DNA of 64,000 nt from contig NW_003314264.1 of assembly GCF_000143415.4 (NCBI RefSeq), forward strand, positions 2,923,710-2,987,709, read 5' to 3'. The DNA is from Selaginella moellendorffii. Its lineage: Eukaryota; Plantae; Lycopodiophyta. The notes below the pieces were generated by a model. The model was not told the DNA's origin. It was given only the letters and a program-made list of their open reading frames with translations, and searched no databases. Below are positions 11,142 to 64,000 of this stretch, in pieces; the first letter of the stretch is position 1; each line of letters opens with the position of its first letter. Position numbers and translations under genes: made by a program.

Positions 11142-11214
11142 GGGAGTGTAGCTCAGATGGTAGAGCGATCGCTTCGCATGCGATAGGTAAGGGGATCGAT
11201 GCCCCTCACCTCCA
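11142..11214 (+). tRNA. tRNA-Ala(CGC)
   Basis: 73-nt cloverleaf: acceptor GGGAGTG/CACCTCC with the G3:U70 Ala determinant, D-arm GCTC..GAGC, anticodon arm ATCGC-TTCGCAT-GCGAT, T-arm AGGGG-ATCGATG-CCCCT, discriminator A. A T-rich Pol III terminator follows. Confidence 0.96.
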
Positions 11215-32212: not shown

Positions 32213-34282
32213 CTAATTTAAATCTCGCGCCAATTCCATCCCACCTTTGATGGTGTTCGAGAGGAGCACGTAGGCGGAGGAGTCGCGAGGGCAAATTTCC
32301 AGCATTTGTTCCAGCACTCGAGATCCACTCGCTCGATCGCAATGGCTCCGGCAAGCAGCGAGCAGGCTCCTCCAATCCACCAGATCGGGCACGAATGGCA
32401 TTCGCGACACCAGCTCCAGCGATTCTTCCAGGTGTCCCGATCGGCCCAGCAGATCGATCAGGCAGCTGTAGTGTTGCTTCCCGGCCTGGAGATCGAAATC
32501 CGCCGCCATGCCTGAGAAGTAGGACTTCCCAAGATCTGGCTTCCCGGCGCGGCTGCAAGCAACTAGGAGAGACACGAAGCAAGATTCGTCGAAAGGTACG
32601 CCCCTGATCTTCATCTCGTCGCTCAGGTCGATTGCCTGGGAGAGATTTCCACTGTGCGAGTATCCAACCAGCATTGCGCTCCATGACGCGAGGCTTTGCT
32701 CTTCCATTCCATTGAAGATCTTGCAAGCGCGCGGGAGATTTCCTCTCAGCGCAAATGCAACGATCATGGTGTTCCAAGTGATCGAATCGCGCTCCGGCAT
32801 CTCATAGAGAAGGATGAGTGCTCGCTCTAGAAGGCCACAGTGAGTAAACGAGGAAAGGAGCGTGTTCCAAGAGACCTGGATGTGTTGGGGCATGGAATCG
32901 AACACCCTCTGGGCCTCTTCCAGATACCCGGCCTGAGAATATGCCGCCAGCATCGTATCCCAGGATACCACATTTCTTTGGGGGAGAGAATCAAACAAGC
33001 ACTTGGCATTTTCCAGTTGCCCAGCTTGGGTATATGCGGACAGCATAATGTTCAAGGACACTAAATTCCATCTGGGCATTTTCTCAAAGGTTTCCTTCGC
33101 TAGCTTTACGTCATTGTTTAACGAATATGCGGAAAGCATAGCCGTGCACGAAATCACGTCTCTTTGAGGCATCTGGTCGAACACTTGCTTAGCATGAGAA
33201 ATATTCCCTACCTGGGCATATCCGAAAAGAAGTGAGTTCCACGAGAGAAGGTTCCTTTCCGGCATGCTGTCAAAATGCTTCCTAGCCTGGGACATGTCGC
33301 CTTTCCCAGCATATGCCGATACCATGGAAGTTTGAGATACCAGATTCTGTACAGGCATGTCGTGAAACACTCGCTCGGCATCTTCGAGAAGACTGTTTTG
33401 GGCATATGCTGTAAGAAGCGCATTCCATGTAAAGAGATTCCATTGTGGCATAGAATCAAATGTAGATTTGGCGTCGTCGACGTCCCCATTTTGACCAAGC
33501 ACAGTGACCATCATAGTCCACGACACTATGTTTCTGAGTGGCATCTCACAAAATATCCCTTTTGCATCTTCCAGATGCCCGTTGTGGGCATATGCTGTTA
33601 GCATGGCGTTCCATGCTGGCAAATCCCTCTCTGGCATCTCATCAAAAATTTCTTTGGCCTCCTCAAAGTCTTTGTTTTGAGAATATGCAGCTAGAATGGC
33701 AGTCCATGTTACTAGGTCACGCTGGGGAATATCGTCAAAGATTGCTCTAGCTTCCTCTATATATCCTTGTTGGGCATATGCCAAGAGAACGGCCGTCCAA
33801 GATGCCAGATTCTTTTCTGGCATCTTGGAAAACGTTTCGCTGGCTTCTTCAAGAAGCCCGTGCTTCGCCTGTAAAATAACTAGGCTCGCCCACGAGATCA
33901 AATCCCTCTCGGGCATTTTGTCAAAAACTGCTTTGGCGTCGAGCAAATTCCCTGTTTGGGTAAGCGCGACGACCAAAATGTTCCACGCGATCAAGCTCGG
34001 CTCTGGGATTGCACCAAAGAATCTCTTAGCATGGTCTAGATGGCCGCTGCGTGTGTATGCCAACAACATGAACTCCCAAGAGAAGGAATTCTTGTGTTGG
34101 ATGGCATTGAAGATTTGGAGCGCCTCAACAGCTCCCTTGCACTCCGCATACATTTTGATCAGCTTGTTGTGCATGAAAACATCGCTGGGCTTGAGGAAGG
34201 GCTTGACCCGAGCGTGAGCAACTTTAGCTGTAGACAATGTCTTACATGAGTCAAGGAAACTAGCACATTCGTCACGAAGCAT
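32213..34282 (-). CDS. PLS-class pentatricopeptide repeat protein with long runs of 31-aa S-type motifs and a truncated E region (no DYW); candidate organellar RNA-editing specificity factor; intronless
   Basis: Repeated AKxxFDxMPxRxxxSWxxxxxAY motifs; terminal HYSCLIDLLGRSGHLEE...MPFVPDLVDWRSLLAACRSH...SAYVLLSN, then a stop. The first ATG is at 34282 (frame open from 34330). Confidence 0.92.
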   Translation of the reverse strand: MLRDECASFLDSCKTLSTAKVAHARVKPFLKPSDVFMHNKLIKMYAECKGAVEALQIFNAIQHKNSFSWEFMLLAYTRSGHLDHAKRFFGAIPEPSLIAWNILVVALTQTGNLLDAKAVFDKMPERDLISWASLVILQAKHGLLEEASETFSKMPEKNLASWTAVLLAYAQQGYIEEARAIFDDIPQRDLVTWTAILAAYSQNKDFEEAKEIFDEMPERDLPAWNAMLTAYAHNGHLEDAKGIFCEMPLRNIVSWTMMVTVLGQNGDVDDAKSTFDSMPQWNLFTWNALLTAYAQNSLLEDAERVFHDMPVQNLVSQTSMVSAYAGKGDMSQARKHFDSMPERNLLSWNSLLFGYAQVGNISHAKQVFDQMPQRDVISCTAMLSAYSLNNDVKLAKETFEKMPRWNLVSLNIMLSAYTQAGQLENAKCLFDSLPQRNVVSWDTMLAAYSQAGYLEEAQRVFDSMPQHIQVSWNTLLSSFTHCGLLERALILLYEMPERDSITWNTMIVAFALRGNLPRACKIFNGMEEQSLASWSAMLVGYSHSGNLSQAIDLSDEMKIRGVPFDESCFVSLLVACSRAGKPDLGKSYFSGMAADFDLQAGKQHYSCLIDLLGRSGHLEESLELVSRMPFVPDLVDWRSLLAACRSHCDRASGSRVLEQMLEICPRDSSAYVLLSNTIKGGMELARDLN

Positions 34283-35066: not shown

Positions 35067-35855
35067 CTTTTCATTGTCCCTGAAAAATGCTTAAATTTGG
35101 GATTTTGGTTTAGATTTAGCTTTTGTATTGTTTAAATCTAACTTTTTCCATTTCCTTTCTTTTATTCTTTCCTTTCAAGATTTTAGTTTAGATTTAGCTT
35201 TTCCATTGTTTAAATCTCTTTTTTCTTCTAGTTTTTTCTTTTCATTTATCTTCTTTTACTCTTTCCTTTTCATTTATTTTCATGGCAGAGTAATAGTCTT
35301 TTCCTCCTTTGACTTTGGAGTAGCAATTAGTGCAATTGTTTAATGCTATGCAATTGCAATTAAACAACCAAACTCAGTTAATCGTGGCATTCATAACACG
35401 TGGTATAGCTCCTCCTACTCTTGGTGCCAATCCTTGCGTTCGGCCAGAGTTCTTTTGTGGGAATCCTAAGGATGATGTGTACTATTGATTTGATCACTTC
35501 ACAGTGATTACCACATATCATTCTTAGGATAATGTTTGATGTTTACGTAAGTTTCCCATGTGTTTCCAAAGGACAACACTGCAATTGTACAATGGTTTAA
35601 GTGTAGCCACTCATGGGGATTAGAGTGTTCTTTTGGATGTCTTCAAATGCTCATTTAAAATGCTAACGATTATAATGATGCTTTCCAACAATTACATTAT
35701 CTTCGTTAAGGGCCATCTGAGTCGGTAATGCAATTTGGCGTCCATTTCTGAAGCCTCTTACTTCGTGCGGAGCCAAATATGTCGAAGTGGATCAAGCTAG
35801 GAATGTTGTGGCTAACACTTCGTCAAAATCTTGTTGGACTTATGCATTTACTTGC

Positions 35856-37575
35856 TGTAAGCGACTAATTTTTCCATTCTACTTTAGTCACTTAACCACA
35901 CCTCCAACCACTTGGAGGAGTCTCATTCACAACCTCCATAAGTCCAACTCAGGACTTGGGGCTTGCTAGCCCCGAAAATGGCATCCATGCCACTCAACCT
36001 TAGCACTTGGTCCAAGTGCTCCACATGTCCGATCCCATGATCGACACCCCAAGGTACCACCGATGTATTGGCCTGTTACGCTAAGGCCATGCCCAATTAC
36101 CTTGGTCACCCTGGTGGTCCAACACCACCTACGTTCCAATCCCGTCTCTCAAAGACTGGGTCATTCGTCCATGAGGGATCATCCCAGATCCACTCCTTAA
36201 CATCCTTAGGATGCCTACAGACATGGGGAATAGCCTTCCCCAATATCTCTGTTCCGGTCCCCACCAAGTCCCTTTTTGTCCTTGGCTGTGTTCGCCAACA
36301 CTGCCACTGGGTCAAGGCCCACCGGCCCGACCACTAAGTCCCACTATCCTCGAGGACTTCCTCACTGTGTGACTGTGTCCTTGGTCACCCCACCAGAGGG
36401 CTACCCCTCTTCCTTTCCACAGTTTGGGACTTTGGGACACCATTTCGGAACACCGTGGCCTTACGCGAGCCACTTGGGTACTCTCCCCACCTTTCGCCTT
36501 TAGGTGCTCTAGCCATGGGCTTAGAGCGAGGTTCCGTTGAGCCACGCCTGGTATCCAAGTAGGTAGTGCCACCCACACTTGGACTGGGAGCATCGGCCAG
36601 TCGATCTCCCGGGGGAACTAGAGCCGGCTCTTGAACACTTCACCAAGCTACCCTGCTTGTCGATCCGTGTTCACTCTAGTCTTGGACTTCCCAGTGAGCA
36701 GCTCATCACCCAACACTGGGTCCGGCCTTCCTGGGCCAAACTGGCCTTTCCTGGCCAAACTGGCTCCACTGCAGTCCTCCCCCTACTATACTTTTGGAGC
36801 TCACCAAACCCCCCAGGGTCTGGGAGACGAACGCTTTGGGCTTTCACCCTCTCAGGCTCCGGACTCGGACTCGGACTCGGACTCGGACTCGGACTCGGAC
36901 TCGGACTCGGACTTGGGCTCGGCCTCGGTCTCGGTCTCGGTCCCGATCTCGGTCTCGGTCTCGGTCTCGGTCCCGGTCTCGGTCTTGGTCCCGATCTCGA
37001 CTTTGGACTCCATCTCGGGTCCATCTCGGGTCCATCTCGGACTCCAACTCGGACTCCATCTCGGACTCCATCTCGGGTCCATCTCGGACTCCATCTCGGA
37101 CTCGACCTCGGACTCCGTCTCGGGTCCACTTCGGACTCCGTCTCGGGTCCATCTCGGGTCCCATCTCAAGTCCATCTCAGGTCCATCTCGGACTCCATCT
37201 CGGACACCATCTCGGACTCCAACTCGGATCCATCTCGGGTCCATCTCGGACTCCATCTCGGACTCCACCTCGGACTCCGTCTCGGGTCCACCTCGGACTC
37301 TGTCTCGGGTCCATCTCGGGTCCCATCTCGGGTCCATCTCGGACACTTCCACGTGTCATGTGTTGGTCGCTTTGGGTCCCTTTTTGGAGCCTCGCTTATT
37401 GCTCGCTTCGTGCTCGTTCCTTGAACACTTTGTTGGGAGTTCCACTCCCGCTCTCAATCTTTCAAGTCGGAGCTTTTAGTCCAAACGTTTTACGCTTGTT
37501 TGGCTTTCGCTTCGGCCACTACCACGTGGCACCCCTCCAGCTCCACTCTGGGGCCTAGAGACTTTGTGTCTCACA
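35856..37575 (-). repeat. Family A copy 1, 3' LTR
   Basis: TGTAAGCGAC...GTGTCTCACA; abuts the PPT. Confidence 0.95.
36860..37345. repeat. Composite tandem array within the family A LTR (6-mers GGACTC/GGTCTC grading into 12-mers GGACTCCATCTC/GGGTCCATCTCG); also at about 42674-43100, 55385-55803 (inverted) and 58654-59220
   Basis: Directly visible. It gives rise to the low-complexity ORFs (GL, DS, RT, SR, ES, PR repeats) in the ORF track. Confidence 0.95.
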
Positions 37576-38789
37576 ACTCCACCACCCATAGACGAAGTTC
37601 GATATCCTCATCGAACGGTAAACCATTTTATAAAGTAACACCCGCATGTGTCACCATTTCCATCCTTGAGCCAATATTTGTCAAGGGTTTGACATTGAAG
37701 GCTCACCATGCCTTTTGCATATTCCTCAATGGTTTGACACCAAAGGCTCACCATGCCTTGCCCATCCTCTAAGGAGGGTAGTCTCTCCAACTTAGAGACT
37801 GATTGGACCACATGTAGTGGTTTTCTCCTTTTATTGGTTTAGTTCCCGCTAAACCTCTTAGAGACCCTCCTCTAAGTCAATCCCACTACTCCTTCTAGAG
37901 TAGTTTTAATTTCCATCTATTGAACGTTTTGCACCTTGAAACTTTTACCCTTTTGACTTTTGGAAGTCAATTTCCTAGGTGTCTCCAACACCTTGCATTG
38001 CACCGATTGTGCAACTCCACTTCCCCATCCTAGGAAGTTCATTACTTGAGGGCACCATCATCCTCTCTTCTATTTCGCGCCACCTTGGGCACTAAGTTCC
38101 ATTTATCATACTTTGTGCTAGGGCTGTCCATGGCTTTATCATTTGGCTACCTTACCGCTCCCTCCCTTGGAGCTTCCATTTTTGCCAAATCGGAGCAATT
38201 CGGAATCCATCCTTGGAAACACACTTCCTTTCCCGCAATTTGTTAGCGTCCAACACATTAGTATTCCTCGCCTAACTTTGCCACTTGGATTCCTTCCAAG
38301 GGATTCCACGGCCCTATCCTGGCCACTCATCTTTTGCTCCTATCCGTTGATTGTTGCACCCAGCAACACCGAATGTCTACCTCCCTCCTTGAGGTATTCC
38401 TTTGATTCCATAGCAAAGGCTTGCTTTTGCCAAGACTAGGGTGTTCACCCCTAGTAAGTCTCTTTAGCACCTTCTACTGTGGCCTCTATCCACGGCCCAA
38501 CTTGTGACCCTCCCATGGGTCTCTTATAGAGACTACTTTCCTTGCTCACACTATGCCATCGCAATGACATAGCTTACTTCCCTAAGGTGCTTTTCCCACT
38601 TGGTCACCTTGACCAAGCCACACCATCATCAATAGTTCAAATCAACACTTTGAACTAGGAACCTTATTCCTTAACCCAAACAAAGACTTTGTCCTTATTT
38701 AGCCACAAGATCACCTAGTGATCTCACCTCGGCACTTTAACAGGTTTGCCAATAGGTACTAGGTCTTCTAGACCTTCAAATTGTTGACT

Positions 38790-39201
38790 ATAACCCCGGG
38801 GGCATCCCCCACACTTGGCGGTGCACCCAAGCCAGCCCTTACGGCCAAGGGTTCATAACAACTGAGATTAGGTGTCCCCATCTCACTCACCACGTCCTTG
38901 GTGCCACTTGCACCAAAGCGTTCAAGTTAGATATGCTGAGCTTTCACACTAAGCAATCTAACCGTGCATCACGACTCCGAGGCATCCCTCGCTTGGCGGT
39001 GTGCCCAAACCAGTCTCCCCACTGAGAGTCCATGACCACCGAAATATGAGTGTCCTCATATTCCAAACCATCACCACGCCCTAGTGATTTGGGACTCAAA
39101 CCCAAACACTAGAGGGTCGAGACTCGAACCCAACCTCCGTATATGCATCTACGGACGGCATCACACCGGATGCCTGGCGTGACTCCCCACGCCGGTGCAC
39201 C
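38790..39201 (-). ncRNA. Candidate structured cis-acting RNA domain in the family A interior (copy 1)
   Basis: A dozen or more consecutive hairpins, a duplicated module with covariation and two T-arm-like hairpins; near-identical in copy 3 (about 60660-61071). Function is inferred only. Confidence 0.55.
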
Positions 39202-41678
39202 AACTTATATTAAAGCGCGCTATAGATCACAGCTTAGGAACCTAGTTCCTCCCCACTGCCAAGTCTTCTCACTTGACAAGTCTGTGATCATGCATGGACT
39301 CCTCCATGCTTGGCCCCATGGCCCACCCTTTTTTGAAGTTATCACCTTCAACTAGGGTATTTGTTCCCTTGACTTGCCAATCTCGCTTTGGCAAGTCCTC
39401 CGACCACTGTAACATAGTTCCTGCACAAGCGTAAAAGCCCTTGATCATCGACTTTCGTTCAAAGCCTTCTCTTTGAACACTCGGGAACTACTTCCCTAAC
39501 CTTGATAGCCTTGCGTCATGGCAAGCTTCAAGACCACGCTTCTGCTGCGCCACTTTGATTTGGTGCGTTCCTTGAACCACTTACGCTTGGCCTTTCTAGG
39601 TACTACGCTACCTAGAATCCTCTTTGGGAACCTTGAAGGAACTCTGTCCCTTAGCTTGCTAAGACCCCCCTTTTTGCAAGCTTTCCAATTACCATATAGT
39701 CTAATATGGACAATTCCATATTTTAGACTCTCCATGGCATCACGGTTGTTAGCAGCAACACCCTCGAGCCCCCACTTGATTCTCCACTCCCAGCTAGCAT
39801 AACCAACCTTGGTTATGCCCTTCAATTCCTATGGTTCGGTTCTATCCCCTTACTTCTTGCTTTTGGCTTCACACCTTTCCTTCAGTCATTCTCCTCCAGA
39901 CTAGGAGGATAGCCTTTGCACTTTCTATCATGCCTTAGCAAGTATTCTTAGGGATGAACCTACCCGATAGCCTAGGGAGTGGTTCCTGAATCCATGTATG
40001 CTCACTCTATAATCCCACACACCGGGATTACGTTGTTGCTTACGGGCCTTTACATGCCCATCGCTAGCCTTGCCAAAATTCCATTTTTGGCTTTGTCCAA
40101 TTCGAGTAGACAGTCTTCTCCTATCTCGCCACCTTGGACATTTGGATAGCACCTACTATCCATCGTTCGCTAGGGACTTAGTCCCTTGGGCCTTATCTAC
40201 TGCCCTCACAACATCAAACACCACCTCTTGGTGTTCTAGAGTGTTCGGGTGTCCCAATGACGGCTTCCTTGACAATGAGTATTTCCTTTTATGACATTGA
40301 CTTACTATATCGCAACATAAGCAACTCATCCCCCATAAGGGTATATCCAACTTTCCTATGCCATTAAGAAGGCTTGGGTAGCTACCTTCTACCCGTTTAA
40401 CCAATTATTTGGCACCTCTTGCTTAGTTGCCTCGTAGTTGTCAAGTCTTACAACTCATTGCTGGTGCTTCCACACCTCCATCATTATCTGGGTCACCACA
40501 CTCCAATTGCATGCTCTGCAGCTTAGGCTATATCATTCCCATTTCTATTGGGATTCCTTTGGCAAGGGGTTCTCATGAACCCACCAACATAGCCTCAAGG
40601 TATCACACCTTGGCACATTTGGTGTCTCCACACCATCGGCTCCACGAGCCTACCTCTATGACACTTCTTCTTTGTGTTTAAGTCTTTGCCAAGACCAATA
40701 CCACGCTTTCTCATGCCAACCATCCGTTAGCATTGCATCATAGAAGTCACACACAACTTTGTGTCAAAGTTGTTTTCTTTTTGGGAACACATTTCCCACG
40801 ACTTTAGCATGGCACATTTTGCCATCGATGAGATACCCTTTGCTCTCATCCTTGGATCCTATGATCCCCCCCCATCCTTTGTGGGGTACAACACACCTCA
40901 GTCCAAATGCTTCCATCGGTCCTTTTAGGACCATCCCTTGACTCTACTTGAGTCATCCAGCAGTTTTGGACTTGGTTAATCCACAGACCCGTAAGGTCCT
41001 ACTTGTGAGGCACTAGCTCACTAGAATACACTTCTTGCATTCCTGTCCTACTCAAAAGGACTATTTTCACAAGTGTTACTCTGACACTTGATTTTGTTCT
41101 CTGGGGGCAACCTTTGCCCCTTAGGACTACTTGTCCATGCGATGAGAATACCAACTCATCTCTAAGTACACCCCCCAACTCCTTGGGTTGTTCCAGCATT
41201 TATTAAAGGTAGCCCTGGCTACCATTTCAAGGACTTGAGTCCTCTTCCGTATTTGACCTCCCACGGTCATTACCTCTGGTCTCACATTCATGAGCACCAT
41301 CCTCAACTATATGAGGATAATCTTGTGACTCCTTTATTGTTTTGGAGTCTACATCTTTCTCGTGATCCCAACTATAGTTGTTTATCACAACTACGTTAGC
41401 CCGTTTGCTGTGTCAAACGCTCATTTGGATCACATCCTCAGCTCTCTAAGGAGACTTTATACTGTTCCCAAGATCCCAAAGTCGTTCCATTATTGGCCCT
41501 TTTCTATCCACCATATTGTGCCCAAGCTCACGCATGAACTTGAGTGGAGAGCCATGTACTCTCGACATGCTCCTCCTCAAGGATAGGCCCACTCCTAGGA
41601 CCTTCCGATACCAACATCAATGGTGATATACTTGAGCACCAATAAAAGTCGGACTAAGGAACAGCTCCAATACCAAGT

Positions 41679-43330
41679 TGTAAGCGACTAATTTTTCCAT
41701 TCTACTTTAGTCACTTAACCACACCTCCAACCACTTGGAGGAGTCTCATTCACAACCTCCATAAGTCCAACTCAGGACTTGGGGCTTGCTAGCCCCGAAA
41801 ATGGCATCCATGCCACTCAACCTTAGCACTTGGTCCAAGTGCTCCACATGTCCAATCCCATGATCGACACCCCAAGGTACCACCGATGTATTGGCCTGTT
41901 ACGCTAAGGCCATGCCCAATTACCTTGGTCACCCTAGTGGTCCAACACCACCTACGTTCTAATCCCGTCTCTCAAAGACTGGGTCATTCGTCCATGAGGG
42001 ATCATCCCAGATCCACTCCTTAACATCCTTAGGATGCCTACAGACATGGGGAATAGCCTTCCCCAATATCTCTGTTCCGGTCCCCACCAAGTCCCTTTTT
42101 GTCCTTGGCTGTGTTCGCCAACACTGCCACTGGGTCAAGGCCCACCGGCCTGACCACTAAGTCCCACTATCCTCGAGGACTTCCTCACTGTGTGACTGTG
42201 TCCTTGGTCACCCCACTAGAGGGCTACCCCTCTTCCTTTCCACAGTCTGGACACCATTTCGGAACACCGTGGCCTTACGCGAGCCACCTGGGTACTCTCC
42301 CCACCTTTCGCCTTTAGGTGCTCTAGCCATGGGCTTAGAGCGAGGTTCCATTGAGCCACGCCTGGTATCCAAATAGGTAGTGCCACCCACACTTGGACTG
42401 GGAGCATCGGCCAGTCGATCTCCCGGGGGAACTAGAGCCGGCTCTTGAACACTTCACCAAGCTACCCCGCTTGTCGGTCCGTGTTCACTCTAGTCTTGGA
42501 CTTCCCAGTGAGCAGCTCATCACCCAACACTGGGTCCGGCCTTCCTGGGCCAAACTGGCCTTTCCTGGCCAAACTGGCTCCACTGCAGTCCTCCCCCTAC
42601 TATACTTTTGGAGCTCACTAAACCCCCCAGGGTCTGGGAGACGAACGCTTTGGGCTTTCACCCTCTCAGGCTCCGGACTCGGACTCGGACTCGGACTTGG
42701 GCTCGGCCTCGGTCTCGGTCTCGGTCCCGATCTCGGTCTCGGTCTCGGTCCCGGTCTCAGTCTTGGTCCCGGTCTCGACTTTGGACTCCATCTCGGGTCC
42801 ATCTCGGACTCCAACTCGGACTCCATCTCGGACTCCATCTCGGGTCCATCTCGGGTCCATCTCGGACTCCATCTCGGACTCCACCTCGGACTCCGTCTCG
42901 GGTCCATCTCGGGTCCCATCTCAGGTCTATCTCGGGTCCATCTCGAACTCCATCTCGGACACCATCTCGGACTCCAACTCGGATCCATCTCGGCTCCATC
43001 TCGGACTCCATCTCGGACTCCACCTCGAACTCCGTCTCGGGTCCACCTCGGACTCCGTCTCGGGTCCATCTCGGGTCCCATCTCGAGTCCATCTCGGACA
43101 CTTCCACATGTCATGTGTTGGTCCCTTTGGGTCCCTTTTTGGAGCCTCGCTTATTGCTCGCTTCGTGCTCGTTCCTTGAACACTTTGTTGGGAGTTCCAC
43201 TCCCGCTCTCAATCTTTCAAGTCGGAGCTTTTAGTCCAAACGTTTTACGCTCGTTTGGCTTTCGCTTCGGCCACTACCATGTGGCACCCCTCCAGCTCCA
43301 CTCTGGGGCATAGGGACTTTGTGTCTCACA
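41679..43330 (-). repeat. Family A copy 1, 5' LTR
   Basis: TGTAAGCGAC...GTGTCTCACA; abuts the PBS; highly similar to 35856-37575 apart from tandem-array length and scattered substitutions and small indels. Confidence 0.95.
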
Positions 43331-43335
43331 CTTGC

Positions 43336-46745: not shown

Positions 46746-48042
46746 TGTAACACACGTGGTTTTTACCTTTTATCCTATAGTGATTTACCGTAGGATAACA
46801 CCATGAAGAAGAACCTAAACCCTCTATGTGCCACGTGTTCAAAGGACAGTGGTGTGGAACCCAAGGCTCAGGGCCACTAAACAAAGGAACGGTGCCAAAC
46901 TCCCAAGCATGGAGCCAAGGAGTGACTGAACCAGACCATGAAGCAACTCCTAAGCATACAACCCAAGGAGCGAAGGGACAAGAGCCCAGAATGACTTAGA
47001 ACAGTCTTAGAGAGATTAGCATCCCATTGCCAAGATTAGCATGCAAAATGGAGCTAAACGGAGTCTGGCGCTATTTCGGCATACCGGTGGCCTAAAGACA
47101 TTGGTACTCCACTAGCTAGCATGGAATGGAACTTGGGCTTATACCCAAGCCAGATGCAGAACAAGGATAGGCATGCAAGCGGGAGTTAAACTATGCCTTA
47201 GGTTAGTTGGCCATACCCGACTTACCCACTATCCCTACTATACATTTGGAACCCCCCACATCCCCCCCCCCCCCCCCATTGAGATCATCATTTTCATCTC
47301 TATATATGTAACGAGACTAATTCCCTAATCATTGGATAGTACTCGCTAAGACGTATTCTCTAATACCAAATGTAGCACACGTCCTATAGTAATTTACCAT
47401 AGGATAACACTACGAAGTGGAACCTAAACCCTCTATATGCCATGTATTATATGCCATGTGTCACATGCCACGTGTCCAAAAGACAGTGGTGTGGAACCCG
47501 AGGTTCAGGGCCTTGGGCCACTGAACAAAGGAATAGTGCCAAACTCCCAAGCATGGAGCCAAAGAGTGATTGAACCAGACTATGGAGCAACTCCCGAGCA
47601 TACAGCCCAAGGAGCGAAGGGATAGGAGCTTGGAGCGACTTGGAAAAATCCTAGAGCGACCAATATCCCATTGCCAGGACCAACACGCAAAATAGAGCTA
47701 AACGGAGTCTAGTACTATTTCGGCATACTAGTGGCATAATGCAAGGACATGGCTACTCCACCAGCTATCATGGAATAGAACTTGGGCTTATACCCAAGTT
47801 GGACGCAAAACAAGGACAAGCATGCAAGTAGGAGGCAAAACAAGGACAAGCATGCAAGTAGGAGGTAAACTATGCCTTAAGTTGGTCAGCCATACCCAAC
47901 TTACCCACTATCCCTACTATACATTTAGAACCCCCCATAGCCCCCCCACTGAGATCATCATTTTCATCTCTGCATATGTAACGAGACTAATTCTCTAATC
48001 TCATTGGATAGTACTCGCTGAGACGTATTCTCTAATACCAAA
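46746..48042 (-). repeat. Two tandem units of about 625-670 bp (family B partial LTR + PBS + about 95-nt leader), TRIM-like tandem array
   Basis: Units start with TGTAACAC (46746) and TGTAGCAC (47371). Each ends with ...gagatcatcattttcatct...ctctaataccaaa, matching 54040-54133. Confidence 0.88.
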
Positions 48043-51000
48043 TGTAGCACACGTGGTTTTACGTTTTATCCTATAGTGATTTACCGTAGGATAACACCAC
48101 AATGCAAAACCTAAACCCTCCATGTGCCACGTGTTATATGCCATATGTCACATGCCACATGTCCAAAGGACAGTGGTGTGGAACCCAAGGTTCAGGGCCT
48201 TGGGCCACTAAACGAAGGAACGGTGCCAAACTCCCAAGCATGGAGCCAAGGAGTGATTGAACCGGACCATGGAGCAACTCTCGAGCATATATCCCAAGGA
48301 GCAAAGGGACAGGAGTCCGGAACGACTTAGAACAGTCTTAGAGAGACTAGCATCCCATTGCCAGGACTAGCATGCAAAATGGAGATAAACAGAGTTTTGC
48401 ACTATTTCAGCATACCGGTGGCCTAACGTAAGGACATGGCTACTCCACTAGCTAGCATGGAATGAAACTTGGGCTTAGACCTAAGCCAGACATAGAACAA
48501 AGACAGGCATGTAAGTGGGAACTAAACTATGCCTCAGGTTTGTCGGCCATGCCTAACCTACTCACTACTCACTTTCCCCCCCCCCCCCCCCCCCCCACCC
48601 TCTAGGAACACACGCTTTGGGCTTTCATCCCAAGCCTCCCTTAATATCAAGAGTTACTAGCTTGAAACTTACTAAATATGGAATGTCCCTAGATTGTGAA
48701 TTTAGACACATGACAAACACCATTGTGTTCAGAACAATCTCTATATTCCATAGATGTGCCAAATGAGCAAATTTAGACATTTTCCATAATTAGCATTTGG
48801 GACCGAAATATAACACAAAGGGCATGATAGTGAGGGTGTTTGGTAGACACAATAAGTTATCATCTAGCAAATATTGAGGGACAAATCTCAATATTGCGAG
48901 TGTTCTTAATACTAGCAAGTGCAAGCCAATGACAGGAGTTTCTCAAATCAGGCTAAGTATGCTCAACAAGAAACACATAGGGTTCCTACCTTATGTTTAT
49001 CCGATTTAAGTGCACAGTTATTGACCAATTTCTCAATTAGCCCAAGTGGGAACTGATAATGGGTCCAGCAATATCGACCTCCTACCATCATGGCAGTAAG
49101 AAAATAGTGTCTATAAGGATTGGCTGATAGGTAATTTTTGATACCCGAAATCATATTCGTGACACTCTGCCCCCCTTAGAGAAGATCGATGTCCTTGTCG
49201 ATGCATACTCCAATCTAGACCACCGCCAAGGAAACAACTCCAGAAAAAGTTCACGGTGATCACACTCTGTGAGAAATGCACCAACTTAAATGAGTTAGGA
49301 AGCAACCTCTTTATCTAACGTGGATGCAATACCAACTCAGACACCTTCCGGTTGTCGCTAACAAAGAAATGACCAACGGAGTTAACCACCCTTGTTGTTC
49401 TGGATGTCACCTAGCTTACAAAAGTGTGATATACCCCTACCCACATGGACATAGAGAGAGAAGCCAGAGGCCACAACCCTCCTAAACAAAGAAACCAAAC
49501 CCATCGGTAAGGTTTAGATAAACTACTATAAATAGGCAGTTATAGTGGTTTACATAGTCATGCCCTTTTAACGGAATAGAGAACATTGACAAAAAGGTGA
49601 GTGATGTGACCAATCGACAGTAGTTACCCTGTGATTAGAGATTTCACCATACACATGAAGTGCCAAAGCCAGTCTGCCTATACTGGCCCAAACTCAAAGA
49701 TCAATAGATGGATAATATCAAAGTTAGAGACAATAATATCTTAGAGTCTTAATTATTAGTGAATAAATTTTATATTAGAACATAAAAGTATTCCAAGTAA
49801 GTTATCATCTGATAGACCACTAGTAGAGTATAGAAACCACCAAGATCACTATCATTGGAAAACATAGAATTCACTATCCAATAAAATTCAATAACAAAGG
49901 TATCATCAAGTAAACTCAATGACAAATCTTAACTAGTGAAAATTATAGACAGTATGCTAAACAACTTACGAAAGAAAATTCAAAAAACACAAAGTATCAT
50001 TGATTGACAAACAAAATGCTTGCGAATATATCACCCAAAGGAAATAACATCTCAATTTATCAGAACTAACTCAAGCAATGATCAACAGAACAGAATGACT
50101 ATTGTAAGACCAACAAACATAATGTTCATGCTAACTATTGCACTAGCGAATCTGAATAGATCTCAGTCACAATACGAAAGAACTCAAGTTGCTTAAGCAA
50201 GTGTCAGCAACATCCTATCGATGTCTCAAACCCAAGAAACCAATCCAAAGCAAACCACAAAGAACATATGGTAATGCGAAAAGCCAAAAATCATCAAAGA
50301 AAACAACTAACCATTATGAAGATTATCAATCATCCCATTAATAGAGATATGCATAATCATCATCAAAAAAGAAATCGATCATCCCACAGAATGGTAAATC
50401 ATTCTACATTAACAATAATCAAGAAAAAATCTTTGACAAAGATAATCAACTATCCGAGATGATAGTCAATCATCACCAATAATTGCTAAATGCAAAAACC
50501 AACTTCAACATCAAAGCTAATAAGCCAAAATGCTTTCCCTTAACAACTCCGAACAAATAAAATAATGAGCATGAAAATTTAAAAAATCAAAAGCTTGAAG
50601 AAGTCTATAGCTAAGTCTTGCATAATAATGATCACAAGCTTCACATGAACTAATTTCAATGCTAAAAAAGAAATCATGGTACAACCCACAACATTCTTCT
50701 CAACACATCCATAAGCTAAATTTTATAATGCAAAGTTAATCAAGAGCATATCTGCATCAATCCAAAAGCCAAACACAATGGAGCTATGCTCAACAAGTGA
50801 TCACCAAACAATCCTCTATGAATCCATCTATAGCACGACATAACTCACTAAATAACAAGCATGAGAAAAATAATCAATGACCAATATATCTCAACTGAAA
50901 TTGAACAAGGATTCAATCATTTCAATATTGATCACTAACTCTTTCTCTCATAAAGCTAGCATAATTCACGACTAAATCACGTTTCAAGGAAAAGCTCAAA

Positions 51001-54000
51001 GCTCAACCCCTACTAAACAATCTCGTCTATGACACAATTAACTCAAATTTGCCACTCAGTTCATTTGAACGTCAATATAATTGCTAACTAGCAAATGCAC
51101 GAATGCTAATAACATAAAACTATAACTAAATCATTAACACTATCTTCATCAAGACTAATGAAACTTGACATCTATCTTAAGGAGAGACATCTCATTTCAC
51201 TCAAATCTCAACACCAACAATATCAATAACAAGGCATCACGTCAATGCCATCAACACCATAACAAAGGTAAAAGAAAGCAAGAGTGAATCACCACCAAAA
51301 ACTCTCTAGCAACCAAGCTAACCAAAGTTGAAGATACTTTAGTTAGTATTCGAGACCAATCCTTCAACAACACTTAGTTACAGATAACACATCATCAAAA
51401 AGTGAACCACCACATCCAAGACTTAATGAAATCCAACATCATGAACTAAACGCAACCAAATGACATCAACAAAGGTAAAATTGATATACCAACATGGAAA
51501 AACCATGCAAATTTAATAACATGATCCTCCATAACACCACCCGGTAAAGCAAGTTTATCACTGCTAAATCATCATCGAGCAAAACAAGTGTCAAACAGTC
51601 CTCAATGAAATCTACAAACAATCATTAGTTGTCAAGCAACTAACAATCACTCTTTTAACTTGCCTTCACAAGACCCAACACTAAACTTATATCATTGAGT
51701 CATATACTTGGTCAACATAAACATAATACCCCAAGTACGAGATAAAGGTTCATGGTCAAGCAAAATTAAATGACCATTCTAATCCAACTTAACCGCAATA
51801 AACTCACTAATATATTTAACCACTAGCTCTGAGCATGCCTTGAAGAGGCTAATTATACATGATTAACACTTATTCAAAACTAAAGTGAAGACCATGAGAT
51901 GGACTCATATTAGTACACAACCTCCTTATAGACAAAGCTATAGTACGAGGACCAACATCTTAACCTTAAATAATTAAATTGGACATCACTACCCTTAGCC
52001 AAGGTGTAGGGCTACCAAGACTTAATAAAGATCAGTGAAAGCTCACTACTCTCATAAAGTCTAATGAAATGCAAAGTGCAACCTGCCACTAAGTATAATG
52101 CTATAAAAGAAAAGCACAAGGGTCACCCTTCTTAAAAAAACGCAATAGCCACTTTTCTACACCAACTCTAGACTTTATTCAACTCAATTGCCTTAGCCCC
52201 AAAAGTTAGCATCCCTTTCGAGCTGCATCATACAACTGTTTACTAAAGTTTAAGCCAACTGAAATCAACTCCAACCCCTTTATTAGTATGTATTAACTTT
52301 TTGAAAACAAAATGGTTTTTGAGCAAAGTGCCTAATAGATCAGCCATTGGAAAAGTCTAAAAAAGTTTGTGGAAAATTTTTCATCCTAGAAAAAGAATGA
52401 CTTTTAGTCTAGGAATACAAACTTTCAAGACTCAATCAACTTCCTTCTAATAACAATTTCATATAGGTTCACCTCAACACAAATTCTCGAAACCCATAAT
52501 ATGCTTAAGCATCTAACATCTTTTTGCCCATACTTCCGACATCCAACACCGATATCCACAAAAATGCAAAATGAACATCCAAGGCTTGATTATGAAGACT
52601 ATATCTTTGGATATCCACATTGCACTAACATTTTTCTTCAATCACCTTCAACATCCAATGTGAAGCCAGGACACTAACAAGAAAAATGACATGGAAAATC
52701 AAGCTCTAAGGAAAAATTCCTCATCACTCAAAATAACAATGTCATTTCTACTAACACAAGTGTTAGCAATGTTAATGCCTCAACCTCACATTTTCTCTAT
52801 CCAACAATCTACTCCAAGTGTTAGCAAATTAACCGACAAGCCATAGTAAGTAATGTTATAACCTTTACCAACACCTTAATGGGCAAACTCAAAGAACTAA
52901 AGAACTAACTTAACCTTAGCATAATGAACTATTATCGAGAATTCAGTCAAAGGTACTATAATGCTACTACATGCAAGTAGACTAGCTTCTCTATCAACCA
53001 CTTTGGGGTTGATCATCTTTTAACTAAGCAACTTCGTCAACATATTACTCATTATCACATGGATATAATATAAATATCACAATGACTAATCATCAATTAA
53101 GAAATACCACAAGCAACACCCATATCACTACTACAAAGGTTTACATGAGTATCAAGTGTCAACTCGATTCGACAAAATGTAACATAAATACCACACCCCA
53201 CCAATAGAGATTTACAACACTGAATACCACCAACTTTTGTTCACAACACAAACAAGCTCATGCCACTCTCTTTTTTACCAAACTCAAAACTAATCCAACA
53301 CCAAACTACTCAAAGAGCAATAGCAAGGTTCTCGGAAAAGAATTGAGCATTGTAACTTAAAAGTCTTTAATAGCAAACCTAAACAAAATGGTATAATACT
53401 TCACCACTATCCATCCCATGACTCACCACTTGTAAGACTATAATTTCCAACATGCATCAAGATAGGGACTCTTGATTGCATAATGTGAACACGAGCAATG
53501 AGTCACATCTCATTGCAAATCATCTCCTCAAGAAGAGAAAATGATTTACATGTTTGATCCTTCGTCCCTAAGAACTCTCTTTTCGGTCTTATCTTTTGAC
53601 TAAACCTCAAGCTTGCATTTGCACTGCCTTCAGTCCAATCCAAGAAAAGTTTATGAGAGAGCACGGGAATGATTACTTGATCATGCCTAGGAAGGATCCA
53701 CTAGTGCCATGCTAAACAGCTACGGACCAACTTATTTGCTAGTCATATCAAACCCAGAGAAGGTTTACTTTCACCCATGGTACATGGAACAACTCATGGA
53801 ATTACTGGAACAACTCATGGAACCACCAATAGGCTAACATTAATCCTACCAACTCAAAGTGTAACCTCGAGTTGCTAATGTGCCTCACTCACAAGCCCAA
53901 GCGTAAACTCACACAAACAGAACATTTCACATCCATCTTATGAGCCCAAGAGCAAGCTCATATAATGCGGTACAAAAAAGTAACCAAAATTCATACCCAA

Positions 54001-55152
54001 GGAACGATTGCGAAGCCTTTGCACCCAAACGTGTACCCATTCGGATCATCATTTTCATCTTTGCATATGCAACGAGACTAGTTCCCCAATCTCATTGGAT
54101 AGTCCTCGCTAAGACGTATTCTCTAATACCAAATGTAGCGCACATGGTTTTATCCTTTATCCTATAATGATTTACTGTAGGATAACACCACGAAGCGGAA
54201 CCTAAACCCTCCATGTGCCACATGTTATATGCCATATGTCACATGCCACATGTCCAAAGGACAGTGGTGTGGAACTCGAGGTTCAGAGCCTTGGGCCACT
54301 GAACAAAGGAACAGTGCCAAACTCCCAAGCATAGAGCCAAGGAGTGATTGAACCGGACCATGGAGCAATTCCCGAGAATACAACCCAAGAAGCGAAGGGA
54401 CAGGAGCCCGGAACGACTTAGAACAGTCTTAGAGAGACTAGCATCCCATTGCCAGGACCAACGCGCAAATGGAGCTAACAGAGTTTTGCACTATTTCGGC
54501 ATACCGGTGGCCTAACGCAGGACATGGCTACTCCACCAGCTAGCATGCATTGAAACTTGGGCTTAGACCCAAGTCGGACACAGAACAAGGACAAACATGC
54601 AAGTGAGAGCTAAATTATGCCTTATGTTGGTTGGCCATGCCTAACCTACCCACTATCCCCCCCACATCCCCCTCCACCTCCCCCTAGGAACACACGCTTT
54701 GGGCTTTCATCCCAAGCCTCCCTTAATATCAAGAGTTAGCTAGCTTAAAACTTACTAAATATGGAATGTCCCTAGATTGTGAATTTAGACATGGGATAAA
54801 CACCATTGTGTTCAGAACAATCTCTATATTCCATAGATATGCCAAATGAGCAAATTTAGATATTTTCCATAATTAGCATTTGGGACTGAAATAAGACTAA
54901 CAGAAAGGGCATGATAGCGAGGGTGTTTGGTAAACACAATAAATTATCATTTAGCAAATATTGAGGGATAAATCTCAATATCACAGGGGTTCTTGATACT
55001 AGCAAGTGTAAGCCAATGACAGGAGTTTCTCAAACCAGGCCAAGTATGCTCAACAAGAAACACATAGGGTTCCTACCTTATATTTATCCAATTTAAGTGC
55101 ACAATCATTGATCAATTTCTTAATTAGCCCAAGTGGGAATTGATAATGGGTC
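48043..55152 (-). mobile_element. Family B: decayed gypsy-like LTR retrotransposon; 3' LTR 48043-49164, 5' LTR 54134-55152 (interrupted by family A)
   Basis: LTR TGTAGCAC...GTGACA; minus-strand PPT AAGGGGGGCAGAG at 49177-49165; minus-strand PBS TGGTATTAGAG at 54131-54121. The interior is stop-ridden, with only faint RT/RNase H-like remnants around 52.2-52.6 kb on the minus strand. Confidence 0.85.
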
Positions 55153-57650
55153 TGTAAGACACAAAATCCCTAGGCCCCAAAGCGGAGCCAGAAGGGCGCC
55201 ACGTGGTAGTGGCCGAAGCAAAAGTCAAACGAGCGTAACATGTTTGGACTAAAAGCTCCGACTTGGAAGGTCAAGAGCGGGAGTGGAACTCCCAACAAAG
55301 TGCTTGAGGAGCGAGCACGAGGCAACCAATAAGCAAGGCTCCAAAAAGGGACCCAAAAAGGACCAACACATACGTGGAAGTGTCTGAGATGGACTCCGAG
55401 ATGGAGTCCGAGGTGGACCGAGACGGAGTCCAAGATGGAGTCTTAGATGGAGTCCGAGATGGAGTCCGAGGTGGACCGAGACGGAGTCCGAGATGGAGTC
55501 CGAGATGGTCCGAGACGGAGTCCGAGATGGAGTCCGAGATGGACCCGAGATGGAATCCGAGATGGAGTCCGAGATGGACCCGAGATGGACCCGAGATGGA
55601 ATCCGAGATGGAGTCCGAGATGGACCCGAGATGGAGTCCGAGGTCAAAACCGAGACTGGGACTGAGACCGAGACCGAGACCGAGACCGGGACCGGGACCG
55701 AGACCGAGACCGAGACCGGGACCGAGACCGAGGCCGAGGCCGAGACCGAGTCCGAATCCGAGTCCGAGTCCGAGTCCGAGTCCGAGTCCGAGTCCGAGTC
55801 CGGAGCCTGAGAGGGTGAAAGCCCAAAGCGTTCGTCTCCCAGACCCTGGGGGGTTTGGTGAGCTCCAAAAGTATAGTAGGGGGAGGACTGCAGTGGAGCC
55901 AGTTTGGCCAGGAAAGGCCAGTTTGGCCCAGGAAGGCCGGACCCAGTGTTGGGTGATGAGCTGCCCACTGGGAAGTCCAAAACTAGAGTGAACACGGACC
56001 GACAAGCGGGGTAGCTTGGTGAAGTGTTCAAGAGCCGGCTCTAGTTCCCCCGGAAGATCGACTGGCCGATGCTCCCAGTCCAAGTGTGGGTGGCACTACC
56101 TACTTGGATACCAGGCGTGGCTCAACGGAACCTCGCTCTAAGCCCATGGCTAGAGCACCTAAAGGCGAAAGGTGGGGAGAGTACCCAGGTGGCTTGCGTA
56201 AGGCCACGGTGTTCCGAAATGGTGTCCCAAAGTCCCAGACTGTGGAAAGGAAGAGGGGTAGCCCTCGGGTGGGGTGACCAAGGACACAGTCACACAGTGA
56301 GGAAGTCCTCAAGGATAGTGGGACTTAGTGGTCGGGCCGGTGGGCCTTGATCCAGTGGCAGTGTTGGCGAACACAGCCAAGGACAGAAAGGGACTTGGTG
56401 GGGACCAGAACAGAGATATTGGGGAAGGCTATTCCCCATGTCTGTAGGCATCCTAAGGATGTTAAGGAGTGGATCTGGGATGATCCCTCATGGACGGATG
56501 ACCCAGTCTTTGAGAGACGGGATTGGAATGCAGGTGGTGTTGGACCACCAGTGTGACCAAGGTAATTGGGCATGGCCTTAGCGTAACGGGCCGATATGTC
56601 GGTGGTACCTTGGGGTGTCTATCATGGGATCGGACACGTGGAGCACTTGGACCAAGTGCTAAGGTTGAGTGGCATGGATGCCATTCTCGGGGCTAGCAAG
56701 CCCCAAGTCCTGAGTTGGACTTATGGAGGTTGTGAATGAGACTCCTCCAAGTGGTCAGAGGTGTGGTTAAGTGACTAAAGTAGAATGGAAAAATTAGTCG
56801 CTTACATCGATATAGTAAGTCAATGTCATAAACGGGAATGCTCATTGTTAGGAGGCCATCATTGGGACACCCAAACACTCTAGAACACCAGGAGGTGGTG
56901 TTTCGTGTCGCAAAGGCAATAGATAAGGCCCAAGGGACTAAGTCCTTAGCGAATGATGGATAGTAGATGCTATCCAAATGTACAAGGTTGTGGAGACAGG
57001 AGAAGACTGTTTACCCGAATTGGACAAAGCCAAAAATGAAATTTTGGCAAGGCTAGTGATGGGTATGTAAGGGCCCATAAGTAGCAACGTTAATCCCAAT
57101 GTGTGCGATTATAAGGTGAGCATGCCCAAGATTGAGGAACCACTCCCTAGGCTATCGGGTAGGTTCATATGGGTAGACCTATTAAGGGGTCAAGATGAGA
57201 TCACCAGGTGATCTTGTGGCTAAACAAAGACAAAGTCTTTGTTTGGGTTAAGGAATATGATTCCTAGTTCAAAGTGTTGATTTGAACTATTGATAATGGT
57301 GTGGCTTGGTCAAAGTGACCAAATGGGAAGAACACCTAAAGGAAATGAGCTATGTCAATGTTGTGGCATAGTAAGTCCGAGGAAGGTAATCTCTATATGA
57401 GATGCAAGGGAGGATCTCAAAAGTTGGGCTGTGGATAGAGCCCACAGCAGAAAATGTTAAAGAGACGTACTAAAGGTGAACACCCTCTGGACTTGGCAAA
57501 GCAAAGTGTTTGCTATGGAATTGAAAGAAAACCTCAAAAATGGAGGTAGTGATCCTATATTGCTGGGTGCAACAATCAAGGATAGAAGCAAAAGACTAGT
57601 GGTTAAAAAAAGAGCCATGGGAATCCTGGGAAAGAATCCAAATGGCAAAG
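55153..57650 (+). mobile_element. Family A copy 2: LTR (55153-56806) followed by a deleted, diverged internal fragment (56807-57650); opposite orientation to copies 1 and 3
   Basis: TGTAAGACAC...GTCGCTTACA is the reverse complement of the family A LTR. Downstream sequence matches the reverse complement of about 40311-39950 and then about 38740-38280. No PBS and no matching TSD. Confidence 0.9.
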
Positions 57651-63600: not shown

Positions 63601-64000
63601 GACCACTTGGAGGAGTCTCATTCACAACCTCCATAAGTCCAATCCAGGACTTGGGACTTGCTAGCCCCGAGAATAGCATCCATGCCACTCAACATTTGCA
63701 CTTGGTCCAAGTGCTCCACGTGTCCGATCCCATGACCGACACTCAAAGGTACCACCGACATAGCAGCCCGTTACGCTAAGGCCATGCCCAATCACCTTTG
63801 CCACACTAGTAGTCCAATACCACTTGCATCACCGTCTTGGCTCTCCAAGACTAGGCAAACCATCCGTGAGTGGTCATCTCAGATCCACTCCTTAGCATCC
63901 TTAGGATGCCCACCGACAAGGGGAATAGCCTTCCCCAATATCCCTCTGTCAGTCCCCACTAAGTCCCTTTTCGCCCCTGGCCTTGTTTGCCAACACTGCC
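57651..64000 (-). mobile_element. Family A copy 3: 3' LTR 57651-59452, interior 59453-63550, 5' LTR from 63551 running off the window
   Basis: Same termini as copy 1; PPT at about 59467-59453; PBS TGGTATCGGAGC at 63547-63536; interior colinear with copy 1. The visible 450 nt of the two LTRs differ at only about 2 positions. Confidence 0.95.
60660..61071 (-). ncRNA. Candidate structured cis-acting RNA domain in the family A interior (copy 3)
   Basis: Same hairpin array as 38790-39201. Here both T-arm mimics carry an intact GGTTCGAGTCC. Confidence 0.55.

Follow-up and report, generated by a model that had tools for sequence, protein, structure and literature searches.

LARDs, for example Sukkula of the Triticeae, have long LTRs, a PBS, a polypurine tract (PPT), a target-site duplication (TSD) and an interior on the kilobase scale that lacks gag, pol and any ORF. 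They depend on helper elements and conserved RNA secondary structure was reported for them; structured RNA is thus already known from non-coding LTR derivatives (PMC7215508). Retrozymes and the TRIMs Cassandra and Helenus are likewise plant non-autonomous LTR elements with structured non-coding RNA, and Helenus, a TRIM with a small-RNA module, also occurs in Selaginella moellendorffii (PMC10886601). The competition of protein-free LTR elements for the Gag and the reverse transcriptase of their helpers is poorly understood because the cis signals have seldom been mapped. In retroviruses the packaging and dimerisation signals reside between the PBS and gag, as part of the 5' leader.

The window analysed here, a 64,000-nt stretch of nuclear DNA from the lycophyte S. 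moellendorffii, contains three copies of an element that is, by its anatomy (LTRs, TG...CA ends, TSD, PBS, PPT and no coding capacity), a non-autonomous LTR retrotransposon of the LARD type. It differs from the described LARDs in its lycophyte host, its unrelated sequence and its shorter LTRs (1.7 kb). In contrast to TRIM and TRIMp3 elements (Cassandra, Helenus, Ajax) it is 7475 bp long and has no tRNA or 5S sequence by ARAGORN and Rfam, and in contrast to retrozymes it has no hammerhead in an Rfam scan of the whole element (E <= 5). The likeness to HIV-1 DIS/Psi lies in a 6-nt palindrome loop (GUGCAC), in G-rich loops that include GGAG tetraloops and in competing long-range and local pairing. 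However, the 412-nt block of the interior that carries the palindrome is found ~2.5 kb downstream of the PBS in an element without gag, whereas DIS/Psi is part of the 5' leader, and the block has no sequence or Rfam relationship to retroviral DIS/Psi. The many short stem-loops along the whole RNA recall the dispersed packaging signals of ssRNA phages. This is an analogy only: the replication system is another one, and no common motif beyond purine richness was found in the loops of the element.

The sequence-only reading had described the block as a large folded RNA domain in a non-coding retroelement, and had not recognised it as a described family. Its general idea is right but not new in kind. 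An Rfam scan gave E = 4 as the best match in the block region and E = 0.68-0.74, to unrelated families, as the best matches of the whole element, in line with that statement. To our knowledge, hairpin saturation at seven times the level of shuffled sequence, purine-rich loops and a duplicated four-way junction have not been described for LARDs; it is the degree of saturation, the purine-rich loops and the bracketing of the duplicated junction by palindromes that were not found described. The anatomy of the element, its lack of coding capacity, the hairpin excess, the junction architecture common to both units and the near-identity of two copies are shown here. We infer selection on the structure as RNA, and a function for it, and give about an even chance to the block being a structured cis-acting segment of the element's genomic RNA that serves dimerisation and packaging, or export.

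Anatomy of the element and its genomic setting

The features of the element are collected in Table 1. The ends of copy 1 are TG...CA and the copy is flanked by the 5-bp TSD CTTGC at 35851-35855 and 43331-43335. The PBS-like TGGTATTGGAGC resembles a PBS of the tRNA-Met type. From the positions of the PBS and the PPT it follows that the sense strand of the element is the minus strand of the window. There is no ORF longer than 110 aa in the copy 1 interior, whose longest stop-free stretch has 110 codons, and its ten longest stop-free pieces gave zero Pfam matches at E <= 1. Two spurious ORFs, one beside the block and one in the LTR, have no real relatives in the protein collection, and the NCBI record calls no gene model within the element. 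Its transcript has no ORF and no evident introns. The TSD, PBS and PPT, together with the lack of an ORF or Pfam domain, show an intact, protein-free LTR retroelement and bear out the earlier description of it as non-coding, with the minus strand as sense.

Table 1. Features of the element copies in the 64,000-nt window; positions count from its first letter.
Feature	Position	Strand	Remarks
Copy 1, complete non-autonomous LTR retrotransposon	35856-43330	-	7475 bp; found by self-comparison of the window
3' LTR of copy 1 (sense orientation)	35856-37575	-	contains the core 36516-36976, with <=3% difference among all three copies
Polypurine tract GGGTGGTGGAGT	37576-37587	-	adjoins the 3' LTR
Non-coding internal domain of copy 1	37576-41678	-	4.1 kb (4103 nt); hairpin-rich, protein-free
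Unit A four-way junction	38787-38859	-	~13-bp closing helix around three hairpins; GUGCAC in the middle loop
Low-divergence core tract of copies 1 and 3	38788-39087	-	3 differences in 300 nt
Block	38790-39201	-	412 nt; most stable and least diverged part of the interior
8-nt palindrome GGTGCACC	38820-38827	.	loop of the middle hairpin of unit A
Unit B four-way junction	38968-39036	-	paralogue of unit A; identical architecture as its own MFE fold
Second GGTGCACC	39194-39201	.	5' (sense) edge of the block; pairs with the first in the MFE fold, closing the whole domain
PBS-like TGGTATTGGAGC	41664-41675	-	3 nt downstream of the 5' LTR
5' LTR of copy 1 (sense orientation)	41679-43330	-	~1-2% substitutions against the other LTR, hexamer-microsatellite stretch excluded
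Copy 2, inverted	55147-57659	+	truncated by the insertion of copy 3; two internal deletions
Copy 3	57651-64000	-	cut by the window end; young, LTRs 99.3% identical; block counterpart at 60660-61071

Copies 1 and 3 are ~90% identical overall. The two deletions of copy 2 correspond to copy 1 positions 40330-41678 and 38760-39953, and the block is therefore absent from it; short overlaps mark the deletion junctions. An origin of the block as a nested insertion or captured gene fragment was rejected, no ORF, Pfam match or terminal signature being present in it. A nested insertion is also disfavoured by the gap of copy 2 (38760-39953), which exceeds the block and whose junction overlaps are typical of deletions.

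The three copies sit in a nested arrangement. Copy 3 is inserted in copy 2, and the copy 2 LTR abuts an LTR of another family, whose end is at 55152. This second LTR-type element (family B) occupies 46829-55152. It has repeats at 47953-49065 and 54044-55152, with 90% identity to each other, and further partial ones at 46829-47833; its interior is AT-rich, with no ORF of at least 150 aa and a hairpin density near background. A PPR protein encoded at 32213-34282 of the window has an exact match on scaffold GL377568.1 of NCBI assembly GCA_000143415.2, and the ORFs neighbouring the element have plant-type domains (PPR, starch synthase, Kelch).

Hairpin excess across the interior

We counted perfect hairpins (stem of 6 bp or longer, loop of 3-14 nt) and compared the numbers with those of dinucleotide shuffles. 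The copy 1 interior (4103 nt) has 63, against a shuffle mean of 9.0 +/- 2.9 (7 times), and the copy 3 interior has 67 (shuffle mean 8.7). High hairpin density had been presented as a property of the block, but it extends over the whole 4.1-kb interior: the block holds 7 perfect hairpins (shuffle mean 0.9) and the copy 1 interior minus the block 56 (7.3), and the LTR is enriched too (12 against 3.0). The block is thus the peak of a 4.1-kb hairpin array and not a separate domain of ~410 nt against an unstructured background. Sliding 200-nt fold z-scores are negative almost everywhere in the interior, mostly from -2 to -7, on both strands. Elsewhere in the window, 21 perfect hairpins were counted in the interior of the different non-coding LTR element (shuffle mean 13.4, 1.6 times) and 119 in the gene-rich half (shuffle mean 86, 1.4 times).

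The stems of the interior are perfect Watson-Crick, strand-symmetric and all different in sequence. Most have 6-7 bp, and only 5 of the 63 perfect stems exceed 8 bp. Construction of the interior from one repeated hairpin motif was rejected, its sole internal similarity being that of units A and B of the block. Read on the sense strand, loop positions are 71% purine and 7% C, and linker positions 61% purine and 16% C. Purine-rich, C-poor loops are typical of structured RNAs in their functional orientation. GGAG tetraloops are present at 39292-39309 and 40620-40635.

A less probable but serious reading sees the hairpins as a neutral by-product, short inverted repeats that built up by template-switch mutation during reverse transcription or replication in DNA free of coding constraint, and the peak of identity between copies 1 and 3 as a tract of recombination or gene conversion; the block would then have no function. 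Template switching is able to generate hairpins and apparent compensatory changes (PMC8794818). The hairpin enrichment of the LTRs and the perfect, strand-symmetric Watson-Crick stems agree with such an origin, and so does the turnover of hairpins. Copies 1 and 3 have 51 at common positions and 12 and 16, respectively, that are lineage-specific, some of these with 2-3 changes clustered in one arm (e.g. near 37726 and 38119). However, the other non-coding LTR element of the window should then be marked as well, yet it reaches only 1.6 times its shuffles. Hairpin density is moreover equal among three copies that are 10-20% diverged, the old and decaying copy 2 included, and the greater purine content of the loops relative to the linkers also speaks against a by-product.

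Fold and stability of the block

On the minus strand the minimum free energy (MFE) of the block is -189.5 kcal/mol against -150.9 +/- 5.8 for dinucleotide shuffles (z = -6.7), and on the plus strand -149.2 against -112.9 +/- 6.1 kcal/mol (z = -5.9). None of 100 shuffles matched the block on either strand, so the block folds far better than such controls. The three 150-nt windows of the block, with -57 to -62 kcal/mol, are the most stable of the interior (-32 to -55 elsewhere), and they have 4, 1 and 9 differences between copies 1 and 3. Over the interior as a whole, fold energy and divergence are not significantly correlated (rho 0.30, p = 0.13). The notion of a large folded RNA domain is upheld in so far as no other part of the element's interior is as stable or as little diverged as the block, but its conservation is read from two copies, copy 2 being without the block.

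The hairpins listed in the sequence-only reading are nearly all present. The one given as CTCCC..GAGAG exists, but with a 4-bp stem, TCTC/GAGA. No link to tRNA was found by Rfam or ARAGORN for two hairpins that had been called T-arm-like, and a tRNA or SINE origin of these was rejected, as no tRNA was found in the element. The hairpin at 39136-39155 has an 8-nt loop with a second 6-nt palindrome, AUGCAU on the sense strand, which is kept in copy 3.

Two observations run against a reading at the RNA level: the two strands have equally low z-scores, and G.U pairs are no more frequent than composition predicts. Plus-strand A:C mismatches that become G:U pairs on the minus strand had been offered as a sign of the functional strand. 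In pairs just outside perfect stems A.C and G.T stand at 22:11 and the composition of unpaired positions alone predicts 1.57:1, which means that base composition accounts for the bias. Among single-sided stem changes there are 31 A.C against 12 G.T, likewise 27:12 in the LTR, a bias in favour of the minus strand that is marginal against a composition-aware null.

Duplicated four-way junctions and palindromes

The only internal duplication of the interior lies in the block, where 38801-38892 and 38981-39070 are 68% identical (E = 7e-6). It belongs to two units of ~180 nt, A and B, with 63% identity. Their consensus fold, computed from the sense-strand alignment, has 42-48 pairs (-36 kcal/mol with 48), and its 3' part is a four-way junction of ~70 nt, which each unit alone also yields as MFE fold. 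In the closing helix four pairs are compensatory, changed on both sides between the units. None of 150 controls made of non-homologous, equally hairpin-rich segments reached the energy or the pair number of the real consensus. When one unit was mutated blind to structure up to the observed divergence, 2 of 300 simulations reached the consensus energy (p about 0.007); the multi-helix junction was thus kept better than structure-blind divergence predicts, which counts against a neutral by-product. The number of double changes in the unit alignment is not exceptional alone (46 of the 150 non-homologous controls attained it), and in these predicted folds only the total shared structure of the two units is exceptional.

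A covariance model of the junction finds only its four training instances and one weak candidate at 39222-39294 on the minus strand, just upstream of the block (15 bits, E = 0.04). There an 8-bp closing helix (GAUCACAG/CUGUGAUC) encloses smaller hairpins in what may be a degenerate third junction module.

A palindromic loop of the DIS/Psi type is present in the predicted fold, where the middle hairpin of unit A carries GUGCAC in its 8-nt loop. The palindrome GGTGCACC of this loop occurs only four times in the 64-kb window, at the two block ends in copies 1 and 3. As modelled, the GGUGCACC palindrome pair can join within one RNA, closing the domain, or between two RNAs. A 22-mer common to both units was found nowhere in viral or prokaryotic contigs, and its single exact match in metagenome contigs (Ga0126379_10192195) is due to chance, this contig having no other similarity to the window.

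Near-identity of two copies: constraint or shared ancestry

The counterpart of the block in copy 3 (60660-61071) has 8 differences in 412 nt, at 38858, 38895, 38933, 39098, 39106, 39120, 39167 and 39168 of copy 1 numbering, and the 120 nt left of the block have 16. The earlier estimate by eye (about 8 in the block, 15-20 to its left) was accurate. The differences had also been said to fall mostly in loops or linkers; three are indeed in loops and two in bulges, but one changes a helix pair from U.G to C-G and two affect terminal or loop-closing pairs. Maximum-likelihood segmentation places a sharp change-point at 38787/38788. Divergence is 9.8% to its left (13.5% locally), 1.0% over 38788-39087 and 6.2% beyond.

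Stems, loops and linkers were compared in two ways. Between copies 1 and 3 the loops are 11-12%, the linkers 8% and the stems ~4% divergent. Hairpins defined in one copy are intact in that copy by construction, an ascertainment effect, and the one-way stem divergences of 3.9% and 4.3% sum to the 8.2% of the linkers, which is what selection-free decay of an ancestral hairpin set would give. In a design free of this ascertainment, hairpins were defined in copy 2 and divergence was scored between copies 1 and 3, in the block flanks: stems are 9.4%, loops 12.5% and linkers 11.3% divergent, and the sparing of stems is not significant (p = 0.4), as expected of a neutral by-product. Alignments of the three copies show compensatory pairs in individual hairpins. 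In the one at 38519 copies 2 and 3 each have a double change of their own, and that at 38505 has one, in copy 2. At 38682 copy 2 has A:T and copy 3 G:C, with an intermediate in copy 1 (G.U on the minus strand).

The LTRs of the three copies are similar in sharply bounded, mutually incongruent blocks. In the stretch 36056-36455 copy 1 is close to copy 2 (2-7% difference) but far from copy 3 (16-25%); in 37056-37155 it is copy 2 that is close to copy 3 (2%) but more distant from copy 1 (12%). It follows from these incongruent blocks that recombination among subfamilies of the element family is real. Over 36516-36976, in turn, all three copies are within 3% of each other, against 10-25% in adjacent LTR stretches.

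These patterns bear on how the neutral reading would explain the low-divergence tract, namely by inheritance of 38788-39087 from a recent common ancestor, either by strand transfer when two RNAs were packaged together or by conversion across the 21.9 kb that separate copies 1 and 3. The mosaic of incongruent LTR similarity and the sharp change-points of divergence are what such exchanges leave. Divergence between the LTRs of one copy is ~1-2% in copy 1, outside the microsatellite, and <1% in copy 3. Post-insertion decay is therefore ~1%, the same as seen in the tract, and this decay alone could account for its divergence. Over 38788-39087 there was essentially no difference between the parents of copies 1 and 3, even in the loops. 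To judge from the sequences, recent shared ancestry by strand transfer or conversion fits the 1% divergence at least as well as structural constraint does. The near-identity does not prove selection, because it comes from two copies only and these belong to a recombination-mosaic family.

Selection is nevertheless still plausible. The sevenfold hairpin excess, the equal hairpin density of three diverged copies, the lower divergence of stems than of linkers and loops between copies 1 and 3, the compensatory pairs and the loop composition speak for it. The least-diverged tract coincides with the most stable fold, a coincidence that a neutral by-product does not predict. All three copies keep the LTR core nearly unchanged, which indicates real constraint on some part of the family and suggests that strongly constrained segments occur in it. 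The claim that the fold is under purifying selection thus draws support from the retention of the A/B junction (2 of 300 simulations), but is weakened by the number of copies, two, by the mosaic family and by the unbiased stem test (p = 0.4).

Proposed role of the block

A structured cis-acting segment, the reading that we prefer, would act as follows. The element encodes nothing and would depend on a helper. Its interior would form an array of ~60-100 short stem-loops with purine-rich and C-poor loops, and the block would be the most strongly folded part of this array, with two anciently duplicated units of ~180 nt, each ending in a four-way junction. Through this structure the Gag or nucleocapsid of the helper element would recognise the RNA of the parasite, dimerise it and package it, and protection or export of the transcript might be an additional or alternative role. 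The paired palindromes, the exposed G-rich loops and the alternation of local and long-range pairing in the models suggest dimerisation and packaging, whereas the location of the block ~2.5 kb downstream of the PBS, outside the 5' leader, goes against these. An export or stability element would likewise be compatible with the position in the 3' half and with the duplication of the module.

A bolder version, which we consider doubtful, is that the entire interior evolved to capture helper particles, the stem-loops acting as a multi-site binder of nucleocapsid and the junction domain with its GGUGCACC palindromes as a dimerisation switch. If true, the element would be a hyper-parasite with a 4-kb packaging scaffold as its single 'gene'.

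The cis-acting segment proposed here is an unusually explicit candidate, comprising a 412-nt domain, a duplicated junction, paired palindromes and an interior made almost wholly of stem-loops, and in a small sequenced lycophyte genome every copy of the family can be collected. Were selection on the structure confirmed, the element would become a tractable model for the packaging and dimerisation signals of plant retroelements, and also a test case for telling selected RNA structure from template-switch hairpins.

Retroviral CTEs, the IAP RTE and the hepadnaviral PRE, which are export or stability elements, offer a comparison for the block. By analogy with these, the block could be a post-transcriptional element that recruits host factors, a reading that appears improbable. 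The location of the block in the 3' half, ~1.2 kb upstream of the PPT, its junction module in two tandem copies and a transcript that has neither ORF nor evident introns would all be in keeping with export. But neither the block nor the element has an Rfam match, no sequence feature connects the block with export factors, and the palindromes at its ends speak rather for RNA-RNA pairing. We know of no defined plant equivalents of CTE, RTE or PRE.

It is very improbable that the palindromes work as DNA, as protein-binding or cruciform sites, or that the hairpins feed small-RNA pathways. Equal strength of the structure on both strands and perfect Watson-Crick palindromes in the stems would be compatible with either, but the stem sequences are all different, with no common protein site evident, and there is no miRNA family match in Rfam. 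Dicer substrates need stems longer than the 6-7 bp that most of these have, which are too short for the enzyme.

The dense multi-helix fold had also invited comparison with an IRES or a self-cleaving ribozyme, both hardly credible here, as no Rfam model, those of ribozymes and IRESs included, matches even at E <= 5-10 and no ORF of at least 70 aa follows the block on the sense strand (minus strand, 37576-38790).

Additional features of the element and the window

The sole Rfam or ARAGORN match of the window is a tRNA-Ala (CGC) gene at 11142-11214. Within the interior, copies 1 and 3 diverge most (27%) in a 60-nt segment at 41513-41572, ~100 nt downstream of the PBS. The LTR core 36516-36976 folds better than shuffles (z = -3.7) and may be a promoter, an R region or some other stretch of RNA under constraint. 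In the LTRs, at 36880-37360 and 42700-43110, there are long microsatellites of hexamers whose sense-strand units are GACCGA-like and GTCCGA-like. Their length varies among copies, and they are predicted to pair mutually into a long imperfect hairpin.
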